Shown: positions 6,017-61,227, counted from the stretch's first letter. The stretch is 64,000 bases of DNA from Saccharolobus solfataricus P2 (GCF_000007005.1 NC_002754.1), one strand, 5' to 3'. Program-made: numbers and translations. The notes: a model not told the origin generated them from the sequence alone.

Positions 6017-6069
6017 AAATATCTATATACATTAAACTATATATAACCTAAACTGCAATAGTTAGTTTA

Positions 6070-7128
6070 ATGAAAGATAAAGTTAGAGTTGCCGTAGTTG
6101 GAGGTTCAGGATATACGGGCGGAGAATTACTAAGAATATTAGTTACACATCCGAAGACAGAAATATCAGTCATAACTTCTAGAGAATATGCGGGAAAACC
6201 AGTATCATTGATACATCCGAATTTAAGAGGACTAATATCTCTTAATTTTACAAATTTCTCAATAGATAAGATCTCAGACAAAGCTGACGCAATTTTTCTT
6301 GCTCTACCTCATGGAGTATCGTTAAATTACGCGCCTAAATTACTAGATTTAGGATTGACAGTCGTGGATTTAAGTGCAGATTTTAGACTCAAAAATCCAG
6401 AACTTTATAAAATATGGTACAATTATGAACATCCTTATCCAGATCTATTAGACAAGGCGGTATATGGGCTACCAGAGTTACATTACGAGGAATTAAAAAA
6501 TGCTAAACTTATAGCATCCCCAGGCTGTAATGCAACTGCAACTATACTAGCGTTAGCCCCAATTGTGGCAACAAAAATAACTGACGAGAAAAAGTTCATC
6601 AGCGACGTAAAAGTAGGCAGTAGCGAAGGAGGAGCAAAACCATCAGAAGGTAGCCATCATCCAGAGAGACAAAATGCAATTAGACCTTATGAAGCTGAAG
6701 GGCATAGACACGCAGCAGAGGCTGAACAAGAACTGTCTAGAATAGCTAAAGCAAATATAAGCGTGAGTATTGTCCCTCATGCAGTGAGTAGCATCAGAGG
6801 AGCCTTAGCGTCTGCACATACGTGGTTAACTAATGAACTAGAAGAGATTGAAATATGGAAAAAAATAGCTGAGTTTTATAGGGGTAAGAGATTCATTAGA
6901 ATAATTAGGGGAAACATACACCCATATCCTGATCCAAAATTCGTTATCGGAAGCAACTTTGCTGATATAGGATTCGCTGTAGAAAAGAGAATTTCAAGAC
7001 TAACAACGTTCTCCGCTATAGATAATTTAATGAAAGGCGCTGCTGGCCAAGCTGTCCAAGCTTTCAATATTTCTATGGGATTTAACGAAGATGACGGATT
7101 AAAACTAGTACCCTTGAGGCCTGCCTAA
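6070..7128 (+). CDS. lysY: [LysW]-aminoadipate/glutamate-phosphate reductase (ArgC family)
   Basis: VVGGSGYTGGE, LALPHG, DLSADFR, catalytic ASPGCNAT, DNLMKGAAGQAVQ. Confidence 0.95.
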   Translation: MKDKVRVAVVGGSGYTGGELLRILVTHPKTEISVITSREYAGKPVSLIHPNLRGLISLNFTNFSIDKISDKADAIFLALPHGVSLNYAPKLLDLGLTVVDLSADFRLKNPELYKIWYNYEHPYPDLLDKAVYGLPELHYEELKNAKLIASPGCNATATILALAPIVATKITDEKKFISDVKVGSSEGGAKPSEGSHHPERQNAIRPYEAEGHRHAAEAEQELSRIAKANISVSIVPHAVSSIRGALASAHTWLTNELEEIEIWKKIAEFYRGKRFIRIIRGNIHPYPDPKFVIGSNFADIGFAVEKRISRLTTFSAIDNLMKGAAGQAVQAFNISMGFNEDDGLKLVPLRPA

Positions 7129-7129
7129 A

Positions 7130-7924
7130 ATGATAGTAGTTAAAATAGGTGGAAGAGTAGTTAAGAATTCATTAGATAAGATAATTTTAGATATATTAAA
7201 TATAAATGACAAGGTAATCTTGGTGCATGGAGGAGGAGACATCGTAACAGACTACACTAAAAGATTAGGAATTGAACCAGTTTTCGTAACATCACCAGAA
7301 GGTATAAGAAGCAGATACACTACAAAAGAAGAATTAGAAGTTTACATTATGGCAATGAGCCTTATAAATAAATCAATTACTTCAAAATTGTGCAGCTTAG
7401 GTAAAAACGCTATAGGAATTACTGGCGTCGATGGGGGTTTACTGCTGGCAGAAAGAAAGAAAAGAATAGTCGTTATAGACGAAAGAGGAAAGAAAAGGAT
7501 AATTGAGGGTGGATATACGGGGAAAGTAAAAGAAGTGAGGAGTGAAATTATAAATCATTTAGTTAAATTGTTTGATATAATAGTAGTATCACCTATAGCG
7601 TTAGATGTTGAAGAGAGAACTCCACTAAATATTGACGGAGATCAAGCCGCATTTGCTATAAGTAAAGCTTTGAGAGCAAACGTGTTAATACTTCTTTCAG
7701 ATGTTGAAGGGGTATTAGTAGAAGGAAAAGTAATTAACAGGCTTACTCCTAGCGAGGCGAAAGAGCTTTCGAAAAAAATAGGACCTGGAATGAATAGAAA
7801 GTTACTAATGGCTGCCGAAAGTGTTGAGAACGGCGTTAATAAAGTAATAATAGGGTCTGGAGTTAAAGATAGACCAATTATCAATGCATTAGAACTCAAT
7901 GGGACGGTGATAGCGAATGGGTAA
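7130..7924 (+). CDS. lysZ: [LysW]-aminoadipate/glutamate kinase (ArgB family)
   Basis: VVKIGG, VHGGG, NIDGD, LSDVEG, GMNRKL; position in the lys operon. Confidence 0.95.
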   Translation: MIVVKIGGRVVKNSLDKIILDILNINDKVILVHGGGDIVTDYTKRLGIEPVFVTSPEGIRSRYTTKEELEVYIMAMSLINKSITSKLCSLGKNAIGITGVDGGLLLAERKKRIVVIDERGKKRIIEGGYTGKVKEVRSEIINHLVKLFDIIVVSPIALDVEERTPLNIDGDQAAFAISKALRANVLILLSDVEGVLVEGKVINRLTPSEAKELSKKIGPGMNRKLLMAAESVENGVNKVIIGSGVKDRPIINALELNGTVIANG

Positions 7925-8345
7925 TGCAAATATTGATGAAAGTGATTTAAAAATATTAGAGATTCTGAAAAAGAACGCCAGAACACCTTACACATTGATA
8001 GCCAAGGAGCTTAAGGTAAGCGAAGCCGCAATACGAAAAAGAATAGAGAAATTAATACGGCAAGGTATAATTAAGAGATTTACTATAGAATATGAGCTAG
8101 AAAATGAGATTAGAGCAATAGTTATGGTTCAATCTACGCCACAAATACCGACACCAGAAATATCTAAAAAGATAGCAAAAATTCCAGGAGTTGAAGTAGT
8201 ATATGAAACTACTGGAGATTATGATATTCTAGTAATAGTTAGAGGGACAAACATTACATCAATCAATAGGACAATAGATGAGATTAGAAGCATTCAAGGT
8301 GTTGTGGGAACAAATAGTACTATTATCCTTAGAACCTGGTTCTAA
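7917..8345 (+). CDS. lysM: Lrp/AsnC-family regulator LysM
   Basis: N-terminal HTH (KNARTPYTLIAKELKVSEAAIRKRIEKL), RAM domain TTGDYD; its operator overlaps its own 3' end. Confidence 0.95.
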   Translation: MGNANIDESDLKILEILKKNARTPYTLIAKELKVSEAAIRKRIEKLIRQGIIKRFTIEYELENEIRAIVMVQSTPQIPTPEISKKIAKIPGVEVVYETTGDYDILVIVRGTNITSINRTIDEIRSIQGVVGTNSTIILRTWF

Positions 8346-8354
8346 AATCGTACC
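8338..8354 (+). promoter_or_regulatory. LysM binding site upstream of lysW
   Basis: Imperfect palindrome GGTTCTAAAATCGTACC, matching the published LysM operator as I recall it. Confidence 0.85.
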
Positions 8355-8411
8355 ACTTATTACTAAAAACTTTTTCTACACAAAACTAAGTTAGTATCTA
8401 ACTGACCTTCA

Positions 8412-8582
8412 ATGGTAAATCTAAAATGTCCTATCTGTGGTGGAGAAATAACTGTAGAAGACGATGCGTTACCAGGAGAACTTGTAGAACATGAATGCGG
8501 AGCTCAATTAGAAGTTGTAAAACAAAACGGCAAATTGTCACTTAGACTAGCAGAGCAAATAGGTGAGGATTGGGGAGAGTGA
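8412..8582 (+). CDS. lysW: LysW amino-group carrier protein (56 aa; not in the ORF track)
   Basis: Hand translation [56 protein letters not shown]; zinc knuckle and diagnostic C-terminal EDWGE. Confidence 0.97.
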
Positions 8583-9430
8583 AAATAGGAATTCTATATG
8601 ACATGCCCAGATGGGAGGAAAAAAACCTTATTGAAGAGGGGAAAAAATTAGGTTATCAAGTTGCTACTATATATAGTAAGGATTTTGTCCTTTTTTCAAA
8701 TGATTTTACTATCGATAATGATACAGATCTTTTTATCCAAAGAAACGTATCACATAACAGAGCCCTTATTACTTCATTTTTAGTAGAACAAGTTGGCTAT
8801 CCTGTAATAAATGACCACACGACTTTAATTAGATGTGAAAACAAAATTTTTACTACCTATATTTTAGCTAGACATAATATACCAACACCTAAAACTTTCA
8901 TAGCATTCGATAAGACAAATGCAATAGAATATTCAAAAAAGCTAGGCTATCCAGTAGTTATAAAGCCTGTTGAAGGAAGTTGGGGAAGAATGGTAGCTAA
9001 AGCTGATAACTTAGACGTACTATATAGCTATCTAGAGTATCAAGAGTTTAGCACGCAAAAATATAAGGATATATATTATATACAAGAATTCGTTAACAAA
9101 CCAAATAGAGATATAAGGATATTCGTAATAGGAGACGAGACGCCAGTTGGAATTTACAGAGTTAACGAAAACAATTGGAGAACCAATACTGCATTAGGTG
9201 CAAAGGCCTATCCTCTTAAAATAGATGAGGAACTCAGAGAACTCGCATTAAAAGTAAAGGACATAATAGGGGGTTTCTTTTTAGGAATAGACATTTTTGA
9301 AGATAAGGATCGTGGATACCTCGTAGATGAAGTTAATGGAGTACCAGAATACAAAAATACTGTAAGAGTAAACAATTTTAATGTATCAAAATTCCTTTTA
9401 GAAAAGGCAGCGGAATGGGTGAAAAAATGA
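8579..9430 (+). CDS. lysX: ATP-grasp aminoadipate/glutamate-LysW ligase
   Basis: RimK-like [37 protein letters not shown]; GTG start 8579 overlaps the lysW TGA (GTGA). Confidence 0.95.
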
Positions 9431-10593
9431 TAAAGTTATTAAAATTCTATCAAGACAGAGGAATTAAAATTATTAAAGGAGAAGGGCAATACGTCTGGGA
9501 TGAAAAGAACAATAAATATTTGGATATGCACGCGGGGCATGGAGTAGCCTTTCTTGGTCATAGAAATAAAGTTATTATTGATCATTTGAAAAAGCAAATG
9601 GAGGAAATCTCTACTCTTTCCTTAGCTTTTGATACACCAATACGAGAAGAGATGATAAAAGAACTAGATGAGTTAAAACCAGAGGACTTAGATAATTTAT
9701 TCCTTTTGAATAGTGGATCTGAAGCAGTAGAGTTGGCATTAAAAATTGCTAGAAAAATTACCAAAAGAAGAAAAATTGTTGCATTTAAAAACTCCTTCCA
9801 TGGAAGAAGTATGGGTGCCCTATCAGTAACTTGGAATAAGAAATATAGAGAACCTTTTGAACCATTAATCGGCCCAGTAGAATTCTTAGAATATAATAAT
9901 GTAGATTCTCTAAAGAGTATTACGGAAGATACGGCTGCAGTAATAGTAGAACCAGTACAAGGTGAAGGGGGTGTAATACCAGCTAAGAAAGAGTTTGTAA
10001 AGAGTTTAAGAGAAGTTACGGAAAAGGTTAACGCTCTGTTAATTATAGATGAAGTCCAAACGGGATTCGGTAGAACTGGTAAAATATGGGCATACCAACA
10101 TTTTGATATAAAACCAGATATACTAACAGCAGGCAAAGCTATTGGTGGAGGTTTCCCAGTAAGTGCAGTATTTTTACCAAATTGGATAAGTGAGAAAATA
10201 GAGGAAGGTGATCATGGTTCTACCTATGGGGGAAATCCATTAGCAGCCGCTGCAGTTACTGCAGCATGTAAAGTTGCAAAGTCCGAGAAGATTGCAGAAC
10301 AAGCTCAAAAGAAAGGAGAACTATTTATGAGAATTCTAAAAGAGAAATTAGAAGATTTCAAAATAGTTAGAGAAATAAGGGGACTTGGATTAATGATAGG
10401 AATAGATTTAAAGGTCAATCCTTCGATTGCTATAAAAGTCTTACAAGATGAGAAGGTATTATCATTAAAAGCAGGACTTACAACAATAAGATTCCTACCT
10501 CCGTATTTAATAACTCAATCAGATATGGAGTGGGCTTCAGATGCTACAAGAAAAGGAATTAGTGAAACAGAAAGCAAAAGAGTTGCTTCTTGA
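9427..10593 (+). CDS. lysJ: [LysW]-aminoadipate semialdehyde transaminase (class III PLP)
   Basis: [40 protein letters not shown]; ATG 9427 overlaps the lysX TGA. Confidence 0.95.
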
Positions 10594-11581
10594 TCTTTTA
10601 TCAATATACACACCGTCAAAGAGTGAAGCAAACGCTACAAAATTCTTTGAGAAAATTTCCAAGGACTTAAACCTTAAACTTGAGATTCTACCAGACTCAA
10701 ATTCATTTATACTAGGAGAAGGAGATATACTGTTAGCGTCTCACGTAGATACTGTTTATGGGTATATTGAACCAAAGATAGAAAACGAACTAATCTATGG
10801 GAGAGGCGCAGTAGACGCCAAAGGTCCATTAATAAGTATGATAATAGCTACATGGCTACTTAATGAGAAAGGAATAAAAGTTAGGGTAAGCGGATTAGCA
10901 GATGAGGAAAGTACGAGTATAGGAGCTAAAGAACTTATAGCGAAAAATTACAATTTTAAATATATAATTGTGGGAGAACCATCGAATGCTACTGATATAG
11001 TAGTAGAGTACAGAGGATCAATACAACTAGATATAATGTGTGAAGGTACTCCGGAACACTCTTCGTCAGCTAAGAACAATCTGATCGTGGACATTTCTAA
11101 AAAGATAATTGAAGTTTATAAACAGCCTGAAAACTACGATAAACCATCAATAGTACCAACAATAATCCGTGCAGGAGAGTCTTATAATGTCACACCAGCA
11201 AAATTATATCTACATTTGGATATAAGATATGCAATAAATAATAAGAGAGAAGATTTAATCAAAGAGATCACCGACAAATTTCCAGAATGTAATCTTAAAA
11301 TAGTTGATGAAACGCCGCCAGTAAAAGTAAGTATAAATAATCCAGTAGTAAAGTCCTTAGCTAGGGCGTTATTAAAACAAAATATAAAGCCAAGACTGGT
11401 TAAAAAAGCAGGAACAAGTGACATGAATATATTGCAGAGGATAACAACAAATATAGCAACATATGGTCCTGGAAATTCTATGCTAGAACATACTACTCAA
11501 GAAAAAATTAGCTTGGATGAAATATATATAGGAGTAAAAACTTATATGTTGGCAATAGAAGAGCTATGGCAAAAGATCTAA
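10541..11581 (+). CDS. lysK: [LysW]-lysine/ornithine hydrolase (M20 family)
   Basis: [36 protein letters not shown] metal motifs. Confidence 0.93.
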
Positions 11582-55603: not shown

Positions 55604-56833
55604 TCATCTTCTTAATTGCTCCTTTACTATATCCAATATCTTTCTCGCTATTACCGTCTTAAAATTCTTTGGTATTTTCCTTACATCACCATTCTTATCT
55701 ATAACTATAACCTCATTATATTCAGACGAAAATCCTATATCCTTTCTTCTCACATTATTAGCTACGATTAAATCAAACCCGTGTCTCCTCATTTTGATTT
55801 TAGCTTTCTCAATCAGCTCTTCATCAGAATTTACAGTCTCTGCGGAAAAACCTACTAGCAATACATTATACTTCCTAATGTATTCAGAAATTTTCGGTGT
55901 TCTTTCTAATTCAACTTTAGGTATTTCTGTATGACTGTCTATTTTAGTGTCAGATTTATTTTTAAACTTGTAATCAGCAGGCGCTCCAGCTAAAATTACA
56001 ACATTAAACTTACCATTTTCTATACTTTTTACAACTTCATTTAGCATCTCCTCAGTTGTCTCTACATACACTATATCCTTAACATAAGGTTCTATCTTAG
56101 AACTTATAGGTCCACAAATAACTCTAACTTTAGCTCCTCTGAAATACGCCTCATTCGCAATAGATATACCCATAGTTCCGCTACTTGGATTTGAAATAAA
56201 TCTAACAGAATCTAAATACTCACGTGTAGGCCCAGCAGTAGCTAATATATTAAACCCAGATAAGTCTTTCCCTCTTAAAACATATGAGGTTATTCTACTG
56301 GTTAAGTATTCTAACTTAGGATAGTGTGCTAAATCTCCAACTATCTCTGGTTCTATTACCTCTACTCCTATCCTTTTTAACCTATCTGCTGCATCTGCAA
56401 CTTGAGGTGAAATATACATTTGTAAATGCATTGAAGGAACTATAATTAAGGGCTTTTTCATCCCAACGAAATTCAGCGCAGTAGCCGTTATTGGTGTATC
56501 AGCTATTCCATAAGCTATCTTTACCATAGTATTTGCAGTAGATGGAGCTACGATCATTACGTCATTGTCTTCTGCCAATGAAACATGCTCTAAGTCACCA
56601 GTAAGCTTAGTAACTACATTATTTCCAGTAGCCCACTTAAACATCTCTGGGGAAATTAGCTTGGCAGCGTCTTTACTTATAATGACACTCACTTCTGCAC
56701 CGTTCCTCATTAAACTTCTGGCTAAATCTAATGACTTATATATTGCGACGCTCCCAGTTACTGCTAATAGTATCTTCTTATCAGCTAGTTCATTACTTAT
56801 GCTCCCAATTATCTTCTTTGAAGGATGCGTCAT
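55604..56833 (-). CDS. coaBC: phosphopantothenoylcysteine decarboxylase/synthetase
   Basis: AVTGSVAIYK, HVSL, APSTANT, TAGPTREYLDSVRFISNPSSG, VGFSAET; start ATG 56833 or 56845. Confidence 0.95.
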   Translation of the reverse strand: MTHPSKKIIGSISNELADKKILLAVTGSVAIYKSLDLARSLMRNGAEVSVIISKDAAKLISPEMFKWATGNNVVTKLTGDLEHVSLAEDNDVMIVAPSTANTMVKIAYGIADTPITATALNFVGMKKPLIIVPSMHLQMYISPQVADAADRLKRIGVEVIEPEIVGDLAHYPKLEYLTSRITSYVLRGKDLSGFNILATAGPTREYLDSVRFISNPSSGTMGISIANEAYFRGAKVRVICGPISSKIEPYVKDIVYVETTEEMLNEVVKSIENGKFNVVILAGAPADYKFKNKSDTKIDSHTEIPKVELERTPKISEYIRKYNVLLVGFSAETVNSDEELIEKAKIKMRRHGFDLIVANNVRRKDIGFSSEYNEVIVIDKNGDVRKIPKNFKTVIARKILDIVKEQLRR

Positions 56834-56877
56834 GTATGTGTGCATATATATTAACTACATTATATAAAGATATTGAT

Positions 56878-57381
56878 ATGGAGCTCGCTGAAAAAGATAA
56901 AGGAAGAGATTTCACACTAAGAAACGCAAGAATGGATGATATAGACCAAATAATAAAAATAAATAGGCTAACATTACCTGAAAATTATCCATATTATTTT
57001 TTTGTTGAACACTTAAAGGAATATGGCCTAGCATTTTTCGTAGCTATAGTTGATAATAGCGTAGTAGGATACATAATGCCTAGAATAGAATGGGGATTCA
57101 GCAACATTAAACAATTACCCTCGTTAGTCAGAAAAGGACATGTGGTTTCAATAGCAGTATTAGAAGAATATAGAAGAAAAGGAATAGCTACTACATTATT
57201 AGAAGCCTCGATGAAGAGCATGAAAAATGACTATAATGCTGAGGAAATATATTTAGAAGTAAGAGTCAGTAATTATCCCGCAATAGCCCTATATGAGAAA
57301 CTGAACTTTAAAAAAGTTAAAGTACTAAAAGGTTATTATGCTGATGGGGAAGACGCATATCTTATGGCAAGACCACTCTAG
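56878..57381 (+). CDS. ard1: protein N-terminal acetyltransferase (Ard1/NatA-like)
   Basis: LPENY, GHVVSIAV...RRKGIA, YLEVRVSN, YYADGEDAY; true start ATG 56878 (167 aa). Confidence 0.95.
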   Translation: MELAEKDKGRDFTLRNARMDDIDQIIKINRLTLPENYPYYFFVEHLKEYGLAFFVAIVDNSVVGYIMPRIEWGFSNIKQLPSLVRKGHVVSIAVLEEYRRKGIATTLLEASMKSMKNDYNAEEIYLEVRVSNYPAIALYEKLNFKKVKVLKGYYADGEDAYLMARPL

Positions 57382-57868
57382 CCAGTTTTACTTCGCCTTG
57401 TTCGGGATAATATTCACCATAATACCCCATACTGAAATTACCAATAGATATCACTCTGGTATTATTTATATAATACTCTTTCTGAACCTCGGAATGCGCA
57501 TGCAAAAGAATCCTAGGCTGATTAGATAATACCTTAGCTAGAACCTCTTGAGAACCAACTCTAACACCATTTATAATTCCAGTAATTGAGCCTTTCGGAG
57601 GATAGTGTGAAATAACGATATCTGTAGAGAAGTCTGAAGAGATATTTAAATACTTATTGAGATATTTACCAGTGCTCTTCAAGTATTTTAGTACTGAAAC
57701 ATCCTCCATATCCCCAGTTATACCTATAAACCCTCTTATAAACTGAGGACACTCTATATCCCCTAACCCCACGAAAAGATCAGCATCGAGCTCGTTTACA
57801 AAATTTATAAGATCTAAATTACACTGAAAACCCGCTATGAGGATTACCTTTCTTACCATACCACTCAT
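57362..57868 (-). CDS. calcineurin-like metallophosphoesterase (degenerate motifs)
   Basis: FVGLGDIE, GITGDMED, VISHYPP, LLHAHSE; start 57868 or 57859. Confidence 0.65.
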   Translation of the reverse strand: MSGMVRKVILIAGFQCNLDLINFVNELDADLFVGLGDIECPQFIRGFIGITGDMEDVSVLKYLKSTGKYLNKYLNISSDFSTDIVISHYPPKGSITGIINGVRVGSQEVLAKVLSNQPRILLHAHSEVQKEYYINNTRVISIGNFSMGYYGEYYPEQGEVKLARVVLP

Positions 57869-58715
57869 CTAGATAATATATAGCCAACGCTGAGGCTATA
57901 AGATCGGCTGTTGACCCTGGATTAAAATTGTTGTTAATCAGATACTTATTAAGCCATTCTAACTCATTAGAAGATGGGCAATCGCCAGAGAAAACTAACC
58001 TAGCAACCTTAGATGCTTCTAATGCAGCGTGAGCTCCATACTTCTTATAAATTAAAGTATCCGGGTAGTTTGAAAGTATGTATAAAAACGCTCTTTGCAC
58101 ATCTCTTTCAAGTCCACATAAACCTTCCTTTATAACTTTATATGCAGCAAAAGTTATCGAATAATCATTAACCATATTAAGTGCTACTATATCATATTTC
58201 GATGAAAACTCCATAAGCGTAAAAAAATCAATATTCTCTATTTCTCTATAATCCATTGAACTTAATTTACCTAAATATTTCAAATTTAACTCCTTTAATG
58301 CATCGAGAAACCATCTAGTCTCGAGAGCTCCTAAACTCCTTAGAAGTTTAGCAGCCTTTTTCCTCAATTCAAAAACATTATTAATCTTAGCAGCCTCATA
58401 TGCGAAGGGCGCAATTAAAAGATAAGTACCAAACAACTGGTATTCGAATCCAAATTTATTAGAACGAGTTACCAATTCTACTAACGTATCATAAATTCTA
58501 CTAATCCCTCTAAATCCCCTTATGCATAATTCTTTATAATACGTAGAAGAAATTAATGCACTTTTCACTATATCAATGTATTTCACATTTACAAGATCTT
58601 GGGATCTACTTGCATTACCGGGTTTAAAAATATAAGATTCTATTATTGAGGCTTGAGATAAAATGTAAGAGACATCATTACAAAGGTCTAATAAACCCTC
58701 TAACATCTTTGTCAC
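57819..58715 (-). CDS. citG: CitG-family triphosphoribosyl-dephospho-CoA synthase-like protein
   Basis: KPGNASR, QLFGTYLLIAP (TNxG-like), PDTLIYKKYG, FNPGSTADL; start 58715 or 58706. Confidence 0.8.
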   Translation of the reverse strand: MTKMLEGLLDLCNDVSYILSQASIIESYIFKPGNASRSQDLVNVKYIDIVKSALISSTYYKELCIRGFRGISRIYDTLVELVTRSNKFGFEYQLFGTYLLIAPFAYEAAKINNVFELRKKAAKLLRSLGALETRWFLDALKELNLKYLGKLSSMDYREIENIDFFTLMEFSSKYDIVALNMVNDYSITFAAYKVIKEGLCGLERDVQRAFLYILSNYPDTLIYKKYGAHAALEASKVARLVFSGDCPSSNELEWLNKYLINNNFNPGSTADLIASALAIYYLDEWYGKKGNPHSGFSV

Positions 58716-59577
58716 CGATAATTACAACGTTCTCCTTCTCACAGCTCATTAATAAACCCTCAACCTCAACTTGTCTCTTTCCAAATAAAGCTGATGAAAA
58801 AATACCCTCATAACTCACTATCTTAGAAACATTATATTCATTATTATCTAAAACGTATGCAACAGAAGGATAAATTAAAGCTTCGTAATCCCCCGAAATA
58901 TGAGCTTTAAATTTTACCTTACCTATTTTTTTACAAATATCGTTACAATATCTCCAAGGTTTATCATCGGCAAAAAGTACAGAGATCTTTATACCCCTAT
59001 ATATCCCTCGTCTCCTATTATCATACAGTAAACTTGAGAAATTTATACCGTAATTCTCATTAGCCTCGATAATCCATTCAGAATCTTTTTCAAATCCATC
59101 AAAAGATTCAATGAAATCTAATGCACTCTTACGCCCATATATTATTATATCAATATCAGAATTGCTGTGATAATTACCTAGTAAAATAGATCCAGTAACA
59201 CCTATATCGTTAACTCTTACATATTCTTCTATAAAACTGATAAGAGCATAAATTATACTATCACTGACACTCTTCTTTAATATCTCTCGTAATCTTTCTT
59301 CAGGCTTTAAATGTCTAGAAATATTAGATAGAAGAACTATAGGAAAAGATGCATCATAGCAACTCTCAAAATTAAACCGTTGATTAATCTTGATTAGATT
59401 ATGAACACCATACTTCTTAAATATCCTCTCATATCCATTCCAAATACCTTTGCCGGTATAAACATATTTTAAATAGGCAAAAACATAACCAGGGGGATTA
59501 TAATTGGTTAAAACAGTATACACGTTACCCTCTTTATCAATTATAATGTCTCTATCCAAGAAATAATCTCGTCCCAT
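58678..59577 (-). CDS. predicted nucleotidyltransferase (COG1665-like)
   Basis: LDRDII, YVFAYLKY, IGVTGSILLG...SDIDIIIYG (GS+DxD). Confidence 0.78.
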   Translation of the reverse strand: MGRDYFLDRDIIIDKEGNVYTVLTNYNPPGYVFAYLKYVYTGKGIWNGYERIFKKYGVHNLIKINQRFNFESCYDASFPIVLLSNISRHLKPEERLREILKKSVSDSIIYALISFIEEYVRVNDIGVTGSILLGNYHSNSDIDIIIYGRKSALDFIESFDGFEKDSEWIIEANENYGINFSSLLYDNRRRGIYRGIKISVLFADDKPWRYCNDICKKIGKVKFKAHISGDYEALIYPSVAYVLDNNEYNVSKIVSYEGIFSSALFGKRQVEVEGLLMSCEKENVVIIGDKDVRGFIRPL

Positions 59578-60431
59578 TCTTTCAACCTCACAAACGAGAT
59601 TGGAGTCCCACTACTATCCAACATACTAATATAATGACGTAGAAGCCCACCAGAATACGCATTAGCGATAAATGCCGCACCGACTGCTGCTTCCTTAAAC
59701 TTAAAATCATATTTCTTACCAATCTCCAAATAGTTCTTATTATATCCAGATACTATAATCGGCAACTTATACTTATCACTATACCATTCCACTATAATTC
59801 TGGTAAGCTCTAAATTCCTACCAACATTATAAACAGTTGACTTATCTATCCTAGAATATTTATGAAGAAGATAAGCTATTTCTCCATCTAAACCAGATAA
59901 ATAGGTTCCGCCATAACCATCAACTATCTTACCGTTAATAACGATAACAATTGCAGTAAATCTTCTTCCCATTTCAACTAGAATAAAATTATCTAGTTTA
60001 AGATAAACCCTATAGAAAAATGTAGAAGCAACCTTATCTGCAGTGCCCTTATCAATAACATTTACCTTCCTATCATTAGGTAGACTATTTAGTTCAATAA
60101 CTGAGGGAATCGTAAAAGAATTATAAAAAGACAAATATTGTTTTGAAGCTAGTAAGAAATCTCTTAAAGGGCCATGAGATAATGGATCTTTTAACGTAAG
60201 GATAAATATTTCTCGATTGTTAATATTTCTAATATTGTAGAAAGGTAGACCATGACCAGAAGGCAAAGCCACTGCCATAGGTCTATAATCGGCTATTAGT
60301 TTGGCTAAAAATATAGAGCTTTTCTCTACTAGATCTGTACATATTTCAAAATATTTGATCAAATTCCCTAGTTCATCAACAAAGGCGAAAGCATAAGTCT
60401 CACTACCTGGATCGATACCAACATAAATCAT
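59541..60431 (-). CDS. DUF1464 family ASKHA-fold kinase-like protein
   Basis: YVGIDPGS.T, ALPSGHG, IDKGTADKVAS, ILVEMG, IVDGYGG, AAVGAAFIA; start reset to ATG 60431. Confidence 0.75.
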   Translation of the reverse strand: MIYVGIDPGSETYAFAFVDELGNLIKYFEICTDLVEKSSIFLAKLIADYRPMAVALPSGHGLPFYNIRNINNREIFILTLKDPLSHGPLRDFLLASKQYLSFYNSFTIPSVIELNSLPNDRKVNVIDKGTADKVASTFFYRVYLKLDNFILVEMGRRFTAIVIVINGKIVDGYGGTYLSGLDGEIAYLLHKYSRIDKSTVYNVGRNLELTRIIVEWYSDKYKLPIIVSGYNKNYLEIGKKYDFKFKEAAVGAAFIANAYSGGLLRHYISMLDSSGTPISFVRLKEWDEIISWIETL

Positions 60432-60611
60432 CAGTGGCTGCCTCGCCATATCATTATTTCAAAACGGCTTTTCGTCATCATCAAAATCAGATAGTACAAC
60501 ACAGATATATAAAGTATAGTATTCATTCTAACTCCTTCCTCGCTTTAAAATCTTTCACCCTCATTCTTCATAAATATAATAAAGATATGTACAAGGTTCA
60601 CAATTTAAATA

Positions 60612-60684
60612 CGCCGCGGCCGGGATTTGAACCCGGGTCAGGGGCTCGACAGGCCCCCATCCTAGACCACTAGACTACCGCGGC
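60612..60684 (-). tRNA. tRNA-Asp (GTC)
   Basis: GCCGCGGTAGTCTAGTGGTCTAGGATGGGGGCCTGTCGAGCCCCTGACCCGGGTTCAAATCCCGGCCGCGGCG cloverleaf. Confidence 0.96.
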
Positions 60685-60777
60685 AACTTTACGTATGCAT
60701 GAGTATCTACTAATAACTTACTTAAAAAGCCTTCGCTTGCTAAAATCCTCCAATATCACATAAGACGAGAAATAATA

Positions 60778-60880
60778 TGGTAGCGGGGCCTGGATTTGAA
60801 CCAGGGACCTCGGGGTTTCCCAACGCGTGCTTTAAAGAGTATATGAGCCCCGCGGCCTTACCAGGCTAGCCCACCCCGCT
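60778..60880 (-). tRNA. initiator tRNA-Met (CAT) with 25-nt intron at 37/38 (60817-60841), CCA encoded
   Basis: A1:U72, G11:C24, GGG/CCC pairs in the anticodon stem, CTCATA loop, terminal ACCA. Confidence 0.92.
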
Positions 60881-61143
60881 ACTTTACCCCGCTATCTAAG
60901 ATATACTCTATAGTACCTTTAAAGTTATTGTTATCATTCACTAAAATAACCATGCATCTTCTAGCGTTAACTAGAGAACTTATAGTTAGATTTTAGAGTT
61001 TATGGCCTAACCTACTATATAGCCCAAGCTTTACTCCACTTCTCATACATTCATTGAGAACCTTATTATTTATGAATAAAATTACTCAATACAATAACAA
61101 GAGTCAGATCATTAATGTAAATTTTTTATATAAATTTAAATAG

Positions 61144-61227
61144 CGCCGGGGGCGGGATTTGAACCCGCGCGGGGAAACCCCCACTGGCTCTCCAGGCCAG
61201 CCCCTTAGTCCGCTCGGGCACCCCGGC
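61144..61227 (-). tRNA. tRNA-Ser (GGA)
   Basis: Anticodon arm CTGGC-CTGGAGA-GCCAG, long variable arm GGGG-TTT-CCCC, G73; directly downstream of rps10. Confidence 0.96.

Follow-up and report, generated by a model that had tools for sequence, protein, structure and literature searches.

What is made by four genes that overlap one another and stay together across the Sulfolobaceae? The question is raised by Saccharolobus solfataricus P2 (GCF_000007005.1, NC_002754.1), in which a stretch of 64,000 nucleotides, hereafter the window, contains four consecutive minus-strand open reading frames (ORFs) for a DUF1464-family protein, a nucleotidyltransferase (NT), a CitG-like protein and a small metallophosphoesterase. 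A first-pass annotation of this DNA had placed two interpretations side by side: a writer, eraser and precursor-kinase module for a phosphoribosyl-dephospho-coenzyme A (CoA) modification of a protein or RNA, or an unassigned step of pterin or one-carbon (C1) cofactor synthesis. The second drew support from the co-location of homologues in other archaea; the first did not withstand comparisons with the CitG and MdcB equivalogs and with CitX, the search for acyl carrier protein (ACP) genes, or the survey of coaBC positions. The reading that we favour, with some reserve, is that the operon serves late side-chain assembly of the methanopterin-like pterin cofactor of the Sulfolobaceae (the 'modified folate', or sulfopterin).

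The four genes are arranged as follows, all coordinates being those of the window:

59541-60449, minus strand: DUF1464-family (PF07318) protein of ASKHA fold, predicted kinase/ATPase; 302 amino acids (aa) from the listed ORF
58678-59577, minus strand: NT, a Pol-beta-superfamily nucleotidyltransferase (NTP_transf_2) of the NT-A clade of an archaeal family; 299 aa
57819-58715, minus strand: CitG-like protein (Pfam CitG) of triphosphoribosyl-transferase fold; 298 aa
57362-57868, minus strand: small divergent calcineurin-like metallophosphoesterase (Metallophos_3) without motif I; 168 aa

These positions agree with those given earlier, and the overlaps of 37, 38 and 50 nt are kept at all three junctions under every alternative start codon. 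The end coordinate of the first-pass annotation, 60431, corresponds to the second ATG of the DUF1464 gene, where translation probably begins: orthologues start with MIY/MIF-GIDPG, and an identical database protein is 296 aa long. The ATG of the NT gene is preceded by a Shine-Dalgarno-like GAGGT at 8-12 nt. The same gene order, with overlaps at every junction, was found in Acidianus hospitalis, Metallosphaera, Sulfurisphaera ohwakuensis and Sulfolobus acidocaldarius, which makes five Sulfolobaceae genera with the window; the S. islandicus counterpart of the DUF1464 protein is 88% identical. Such an arrangement exceeds chance, and the overlaps at all junctions in five genera support a single translationally coupled operon.

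Pfam bore out the earlier domain calls for all four proteins. The DUF1464 protein matches PF07318 with E = 3.8e-105, and the motifs GIDPG[ST], DxGTADK, E-G and DG-GG are invariant (D13-x-G15 and D133-x-G135-T136). The top Foldseek matches of its AlphaFold model (predicted local distance difference test, pLDDT, 84) were ROK sugar kinases, butyrate kinase, type III pantothenate kinase (PanK-III) and EutJ, with E about 1e-8 and a probability of 1.00 for the ROK kinases, butyrate kinase and PanK-III. As modelled, the protein has an ASKHA fold with intact phosphate-binding motifs and is a predicted kinase/ATPase.

The NT matches NTP_transf_2 above the cut-off (E = 5.9e-07), and the Pol-beta motif G-x-x-G-S ... 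S-D-x-D (G126, G129, S130, S140, D141, D143) is invariant in 22 homologues. Its predicted model (pLDDT 93) consists of a nucleotidyltransferase core flanked by beta-rich domains. Foldseek found no full-length structural relative in the PDB; at the domain level it gave weak matches, of the core to poly(A)/poly(U) polymerases and of the flanking barrel to the oligonucleotide-binding (OB) folds of RPA and RMI. One of the two earlier interpretations made the protein a partner of the CitG-like protein, in the manner of CitX/MdcG. Its Pol-beta motif and its place fit this idea: the NT gene lies upstream of the CitG-type gene and ends 38 nt inside it, in the same order as citX and citG of Escherichia coli, which overlap by 26 nt. 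Homology to CitX is not borne out: when a profile of 22 NT sequences was compared with E. coli CitX, hhalign gave a probability of 0.05% (E = 0.81), and Pfam matched neither CitX nor MdcG to the NT. As far as these comparisons reach, the NT is not homologous to CitX; we propose that it could be a phosphodiester-forming transferase and a non-homologous analogue of that enzyme.

The CitG-like protein is matched by PF01874 (CitG) over its full length (E = 2.2e-45, profile positions 3-284 of 284). It has the KPGxxxR and NPGxxAD motifs in common with E. coli CitG, at an overall identity of 14%, and E26, K31, G33, G96, D219, G227, P266, G267, A270 and D271 are invariant in 11 archaeal CitG-like proteins and E. 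coli CitG. With the CitG equivalog model TIGR03125 it scores 18.8 bits against a cut-off of 272.3, and with the MdcB equivalog TIGR03132 it gives no match; a Desulfurococcaceae homologue scores 48 against an equivalog cut-off of 282. Judged by these models, it is not a CitG or MdcB equivalog. The nearest solved structure is PDB 3h9p, an uncharacterised Archaeoglobus protein (E = 1.9e-07), while a PDB sequence search gave no informative match for the NT, the DUF1464 protein or the phosphoesterase. By analogy with CitG, we propose that the protein would be an ATP-dependent ribosyl-triphosphate transferase acting on a pterin intermediate. The window had been said to contain no citrate lyase or ACP gene, and tblastn with E. 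coli CitC, CitD, CitE, CitF and CitX indeed found nothing in it better than E = 0.4.

The phosphoesterase is matched by Metallophos_3 above the cut-off (E = 1.8e-09), over no more than the C-terminal half of the profile. In an alignment of four orthologues, GD, H88 and H123-x-H125 are kept, and we propose that it is a phosphatase or an accessory subunit.

The first-pass annotation had suggested a check of neighbourhood and co-occurrence across archaea. When a genome collection was scanned with an NT profile, relatives turned up in 347 species genomes. The best 80 loci, from Thermoproteota, Bathyarchaeia, Nitrososphaeria, Asgard lineages and one Aenigmatarchaeote, were analysed: ORFs within about 10 kb of the NT gene were called and clustered by BLASTP, and recurrent clusters were annotated. 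Counts over 83 non-redundant loci (designated by L numbers) were as follows:

CitG-like gene near the NT gene, usually adjacent: 33 of 83 loci
H4MPT (tetrahydromethanopterin)-dependent enzymes (FTR, MCH, MTD and others): 35 of 83 loci
formylmethanofuran dehydrogenase (Fwd) subunits: 23 of 83 loci
methanofuran synthesis genes (MfnB, MfnE-like, MfnF-like): 11 of 83 loci
at least one C1-linked family: 63 of 83 loci

None of the recurrent annotated neighbour families is a citrate lyase, malonate decarboxylase or ACP; C1-cofactor genes are found instead. CofE-like ligase genes also recur (19 loci).

The check gave a positive answer: in many archaea, three of the four operon genes have homologues inside pterin-branch clusters and H4MPT/methanofuran islands. 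A single block in Bathyarchaeia (L074, L081) contains NT-A, NT-B, CitG, DUF447, MptE, a DmrX-like flavoprotein, DUF1464, PTPS, beta-RFAP synthase and a DHPS-like gene. In Nitrososphaerota (L040), a DmrX-like gene, MptE, MptA, DUF447, CitG and two NT genes lie together, and in Desulfurococcaceae (L017) MptA, RFAP synthase, CitG, DHPS-like, DmrX-like, DUF1464 and two NT genes are followed by methanofuran genes. Counting MptA, MptE, beta-RFAP synthase, DHPS-like and DmrX as pterin-branch genes, such co-location was seen in L074, L081, L040, L017, L087 and L093, and DUF1464 homologues lie within the pterin clusters of L074, L081, L017 and L087. Curated NCBIfam models were matched above the cut-off for RFAP synthase (TIGR00144), the DHPS-like protein (TIGR00284) and MptA (TIGR00294); DmrX was the best match of the clustered flavoprotein, yet below the cut-off. 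Two independent seeds gave comparable results. DUF1464 in Helarchaeota led to DHPS-like, MptA, NT-A and NT-B genes. The CitG-like gene of Archaeoglobus was found to overlap DUF447, and A. profundus has two further genes nearby: one 360 bp downstream for a canonical YfcE-family phosphodiesterase of 156 aa, to which the operon phosphoesterase has a weak profile match, and a DHPS-like one at a distance of 8 kb. Archaeoglobus is an H4MPT user. The earlier statement that CitG-like genes occur in methanopterin- and methanofuran-linked clusters holds for orf7 of H4MPT islands (PMC3615186), and archaeal NT loci are alike in this respect.

The NT family is large, with 1634 clusters at 50% identity in an exhaustive profile search (the member source names seen were all generic), and in our tree the Sulfolobaceae NT falls within the NT-A clade, on a long branch. 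At least two NT paralogues are present in 47 of the 83 loci, which suggests heteromers or successive steps. Most genomes outside the Sulfolobaceae have adjacent NT-A and NT-B genes, in tandem or divergent (for example L057:8961-11047 and L074:3858-5927, and many of L042-L085); L043, L052, L062 and L077 have three or four paralogues, and a third type, shorter at about 285 aa, is found in Desulfurococcaceae. All named homologues seen are archaeal except one 3-kb contig binned as 'Deltaproteobacteria' (L047, JAHECH010000689.1). It carries NT-B, NT-A and FTR, is grouped with Bathyarchaeia in the tree, and is probably a misbinned archaeal contig. A putative S component of an energy-coupling factor (ECF) transporter (weak Pfam match) lies directly 5' of the NT pair in L049, L057, L059, L075, L080 and L084, which come from Asgard archaea, Bathyarchaeia and unclassified metagenome-assembled genomes, and FTR follows the pair in L049, L057, L059 and L084. 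Such a layout hints that a cofactor precursor is imported and its tail remodelled.

Three different types of phosphoesterase occur near the NT/CitG module, in three lineages. In Ignisphaera (L018, L023-L025), a Thi4-family gene lies directly 3' of CitG-NT, and an SbcD-related phosphoesterase of about 282 aa is encoded a few genes away; this type is also found near NT in Methanomethylicia (L012, L026, L027, L031). The 168-aa protein encoded before CitG-NT in Ignisphaera was considered as a counterpart of the operon phosphoesterase and turned out to be unrelated on comparison. As for DUF1464, an Omnitrophota-labelled bacterial contig (L088:8045-10053, and L089) has a DUF1464 gene in overlap with one for a radical SAM/SPASM protein, with transposase, TraG and helicase genes on its flanks, a context that differs from the archaeal one.

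Methanopterin has an alpha-ribofuranosyl-5-phosphate diester, and its head group, in methanopterin proper, is 2-hydroxyglutarate; methanofuran contains neither ribose nor phosphate. A modified folate of Sulfolobus with an aminophenyl-tetrahydroxypentane unit has reportedly been described by Zhou and White in 1992, according to the title of that report. We know of no gene assigned to the late methanopterin side-chain steps (dephosphorylation, ribosyl-phosphate addition and hydroxy-acid attachment), and in the searchable literature we found no gene assignment for these steps, nor a route to the Sulfolobus modified folate. Group-1 homologues of RFAP synthase are reported for Sulfolobus, namely SSO0370 and ST1329 (PMC6787355). 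We favour a pterin over a furan because of the pterin-only clusters, the CitG-DUF447 coupling in Archaeoglobus, the ribosyl-phosphate of methanopterin, and the presence in Sulfolobus of both RFAP synthase homologues and a folate analogue.

The assignment of the Sulfolobaceae copies to this pathway is drawn from genomic context, and the individual reactions that we infer would run as follows. The RFAP synthase and DHPS-like steps would yield a pterin-aminophenyl-ribitol 5'-phosphate, from which the phosphate would be removed by the small phosphoesterase, or by an unlinked phosphatase if the former is inactive. The CitG-like protein would then take up ATP, release adenine and transfer an alpha-ribosyl-5-triphosphate onto the free ribitol hydroxyl, as CitG does on dephospho-CoA. 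The NT would use this triphosphate as CitX does, with the alcohol of the head group attacking the alpha-phosphate and pyrophosphate leaving, to give a ribose-5-phosphodiester. The DUF1464 protein could be an ATP-dependent kinase or activator of one step; we would guess that its substrate for phosphorylation is either an intermediate or the precursor of the head group.

Several points weigh against this reading. Neither in the window nor in the other Sulfolobaceae loci examined does the operon have a pterin gene as a neighbour, and the homologues that provide the link are only 25-30% identical, so that the assignment is one by association. The ribosyl donor in White's extract work was reportedly phosphoribosyl pyrophosphate, not ATP. 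The operon phosphoesterase does not have the full calcineurin-like set of five motifs (DxH, GD, GNH[DE], H, GHxH): DxH, motif I, is absent in all four aligned orthologues, the Sulfurisphaera protein even beginning past that position, and motif III reads G[DE]ME instead of GNH[DE], with loss of the Asn and His. To judge from these residues, it may be catalytically inactive, and the 'eraser' role once suggested for it is doubtful because motif I is missing. The flanking domain of the NT weakly resembles OB folds of nucleic-acid binders. In the three sets of NT family members examined (44, 80 and 10), none was seen to come from Euryarchaeota, and Archaeoglobus has a CitG-like gene without an adjacent NT; therefore the NT would not be a universal methanopterin (hydroxyglutarate-attaching) enzyme. 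A sample of distant NT clusters likewise contained no methanogen member, all names being those of Asgard archaea. Finally, NT lies beside methanofuran genes in 11 loci. RimK/MptN-like ligase genes are located at most 300 bp from NT in 13 loci, and HisA/F-like genes are common too; these neighbours cannot discriminate between pterin and furan, because the bacterial counterparts, RimK-type Orf5/MyfB and HisA/F-type Orf17, are methylofuran enzymes (PMC8141765). The adjacency of RimK/MptN-like genes was at one point taken as pterin-specific evidence and was downgraded: the cluster mixes LysX-like proteins with ATP-grasp proteins of about 390 aa, and the bacterial MptN homologue belongs to methylofuran synthesis (PMC8141765).

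The surroundings of the operon in the window (G+C about 33%) also have to be considered. They include:

55604-56845, minus strand: coaBC, with its start 517 bp from the phosphoesterase gene
56731-57381 as listed, likely about 56875-57381, plus strand: GNAT (RimI/Ard1-like) gene, between coaBC and the operon
60450-60610, minus strand: intergenic region between tRNA-Asp and the DUF1464 gene, presumed operon promoter from a reading of the sequence
60611-60685, minus strand: tRNA-Asp, beside the upstream intergenic region of the operon
61143-61227, minus strand: tRNA-Ser, in the tRNA group 5' of the operon

Three tRNA genes, then rpS10 and EF-1alpha, lie 5' of the operon on the same strand. The third tRNA gene (60781-60880, minus strand), between tRNA-Ser and tRNA-Asp, was detected by Rfam (51.9 bits) and missed by ARAGORN; it probably contains an intron, given its length of 100 nt. 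The intergenic region 60450-60610 holds no element detected by an Rfam scan. It has AT-rich boxes, namely TTTTAAA (60550-60544), TTTATATA (60513-60506) and GAAATAAT just 5' of the start codons, and the GAAATAAT box would suit a leaderless transcript from the ATG at 60431. In four genera, a conserved protein of 171-192 aa is encoded directly 5' of the operon (L096:4489-5004, L092:4585-5163, L090:4475-5020 and L005:6452-7015); it is absent from the Saccharolobus window. It has an N-terminal RxPCFM...YD.TN segment and a weak ribbon-helix-helix match. Its gene is on the same strand and overlaps the DUF1464 gene in Sulfolobus and Sulfurisphaera, and is divergent in Metallosphaera and Acidianus. From these features it may be a dedicated regulator of the operon.

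On the 3' side, the GNAT gene, on the opposite strand, lies between the operon and coaBC and shares 20 nt with the end of the operon. The GNAT ORF as listed has an N-terminal extension of 48 codons overlapping coaBC; its start is likely the ATG at about 56875 (MELAEK...), giving about 168 aa as in the orthologues of L005, L092 and L096. Further away, positions 6052-11578 (plus strand) resemble a cluster for amino-acid biosynthesis of the LysW/LysX-ArgX type; they include a gene of the RimK family (8567-9427) and one for an M20 peptidase (10514-11578), and homologues of this block adjoin NT in the Nitrososphaeria loci L038 and L045.

Could the module act on methanofuran or another non-pterin C1 cofactor, for instance by attaching a tail or linker? 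To our knowledge, the Sulfolobaceae lack formylmethanofuran enzymes while keeping the module, which counts against such a role, and since methanofuran has no ribose or phosphate, its synthesis offers no obvious task for a CitG-type enzyme. Several neighbours do point that way: MfnB, MfnE-like and MfnF-like genes adjoin NT in the 11 loci mentioned above and Fwd genes in 23, the methylofuran-type RimK (Orf5/MyfB) and HisA/F (Orf17) families are frequent NT neighbours, and the enzymes that add the linker and terminal moieties of the methanofuran side chain are unidentified (PMC8141765). The Bathyarchaeia, Nitrososphaerota and Helarchaeota clusters, however, hold only pterin-branch genes, and Archaeoglobus couples its CitG-like gene to DUF447. 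We consider this possibility unlikely. More improbable still is an action on nucleic acid or an unrelated metabolite (RNA ribosylation or nucleotidylation, or ADP-ribose-type metabolism), with the C1 islands being incidental. The likeness of the NT to poly(A)/poly(U) polymerases and RPA/RMI OB folds would fit, as would the position of the operon after a tRNA cluster and the radical SAM partner of bacterial DUF1464, and 20 of the 83 NT loci lack a C1 gene within reach. However, the structural matches are weak (E = 0.07-0.3, TM about 0.2), several of the NT loci without C1 genes are short contigs, and the association with C1 genes is repeated in many phyla and was reached from two independent seeds.

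A CitG/CitX-like writer with a phosphoesterase eraser and a precursor kinase, placing phosphoribosyl-dephospho-CoA on a protein or RNA and tied to coaBC, is what we regard as the least probable explanation. It accounts for the CitG fold and motifs, for an NT-then-CitG overlap like that of citX-citG, for the OB-like domain of the NT and for PanK-III among the ASKHA structural matches, and coaBC is nearby in all Sulfolobaceae loci examined. Indeed coaBC and the GNAT gene are usually close to the operon in other Sulfolobaceae, and the proximity in the window noted earlier is real. A functional link is another matter: coaBC stands behind an opposite-strand gene, its position and strand vary (in Metallosphaera two unrelated genes are inserted between it and the operon, and it is on the other strand), and it is near NT in only 2 of the 83 loci, both from Sulfolobaceae (0 of 81 elsewhere), compared to 63 of 83 for C1-cofactor genes. 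We disfavour this explanation because the equivalog scores are far under the cut-offs, the hhalign comparison of NT with CitX spoke against homology, ACP and lyase genes are absent from the window by tblastn, and coaBC accompanies NT only in the Sulfolobaceae.

Late pterin side-chain assembly in the Sulfolobaceae thus keeps our preference. A wider and more tentative proposal, which we hold to be possible rather than probable, is that TACK and Asgard archaea share a tail-building module for cofactors of the methanopterin type, made up of CitG-like protein, NT-A (often with NT-B) and DUF1464, which would attach a lineage-specific head group by a phosphodiester, with DUF1464 as a new pathway kinase. 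If true, it would fill three or four unassigned biosynthetic steps at once, with CitG/CitX-type chemistry on a small molecule instead of a protein. In the Sulfolobales, which are genetically tractable, the operon is a compact candidate set for the late side-chain steps. It would link three uncharacterised families to one pathway: DUF1464, a nucleotidyltransferase family of about 1,600 clusters, and an archaeal CitG-like clade that includes PDB 3h9p.

Among known systems, the closest likeness is to CitG/CitX (MdcB/MdcG), in that a CitG-fold protein with KPGxxxR and NPGxxAD and a Pol-beta-type transferase are encoded by adjacent, overlapping genes, transferase first. The chemistry proposed for the operon would be alike as well: a triphosphoribosyl donor made from ATP, then a phosphodiester formed with loss of pyrophosphate. 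It differs in that the CitG-like protein is only 14% identical and fails the equivalog models, that the NT is non-homologous to CitX by our comparison and has extra beta-barrel domains, and that no ACP, lyase or decarboxylase accompanies the pair. Because the genomic partners are pterin and C1 genes, we propose as acceptor a small-molecule cofactor intermediate and not a protein; if this is true, CitG/CitX chemistry would extend from protein prosthetic groups to cofactor synthesis, and C1-carrier structures in uncultured Bathyarchaeia and Asgard archaea would become easier to predict. No description of such a logic for a cofactor tail was found in the searchable literature, nor any link of the NT family or DUF1464 to pterin clusters.

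A second parallel is provided by methylotrophs, where a CitG-family gene, orf7, is found among H4MPT/methanofuran-linked genes in 'archaeal-like' C1 islands (mch-orf5-orf7-fae; PMC3615186). Archaeal NT loci show the same association of a CitG-family gene with C1 genes. The methylotrophs differ in making dephospho-H4MPT, without phosphate and hydroxyglutarate (PMC8141765), and the named NT homologues seen here are archaeal, one probably misbinned contig aside; no assigned function for orf7 was found in the searchable literature. The likeness to the tail of F420 (CofC/CofD) is conceptual: there, too, a nucleotidyltransferase-activated intermediate leads to a phosphodiester-linked hydroxy-acid tail. 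F420 synthesis includes no step comparable to the CitG-type ribosyl transfer, and Pfam and curated model scans gave no CofC or CofD family match for the operon proteins. Lastly, the known methanopterin enzymes (MptA, MptE, beta-RFAP synthase MptG, the DHPS-like MJ0301 family, DmrX and MptN) cluster with homologues of three of the four operon genes in several archaeal phyla. None of the four operon proteins belongs to these families; they would supply the steps that follow the DHPS-like condensation, up to the complete side chain.

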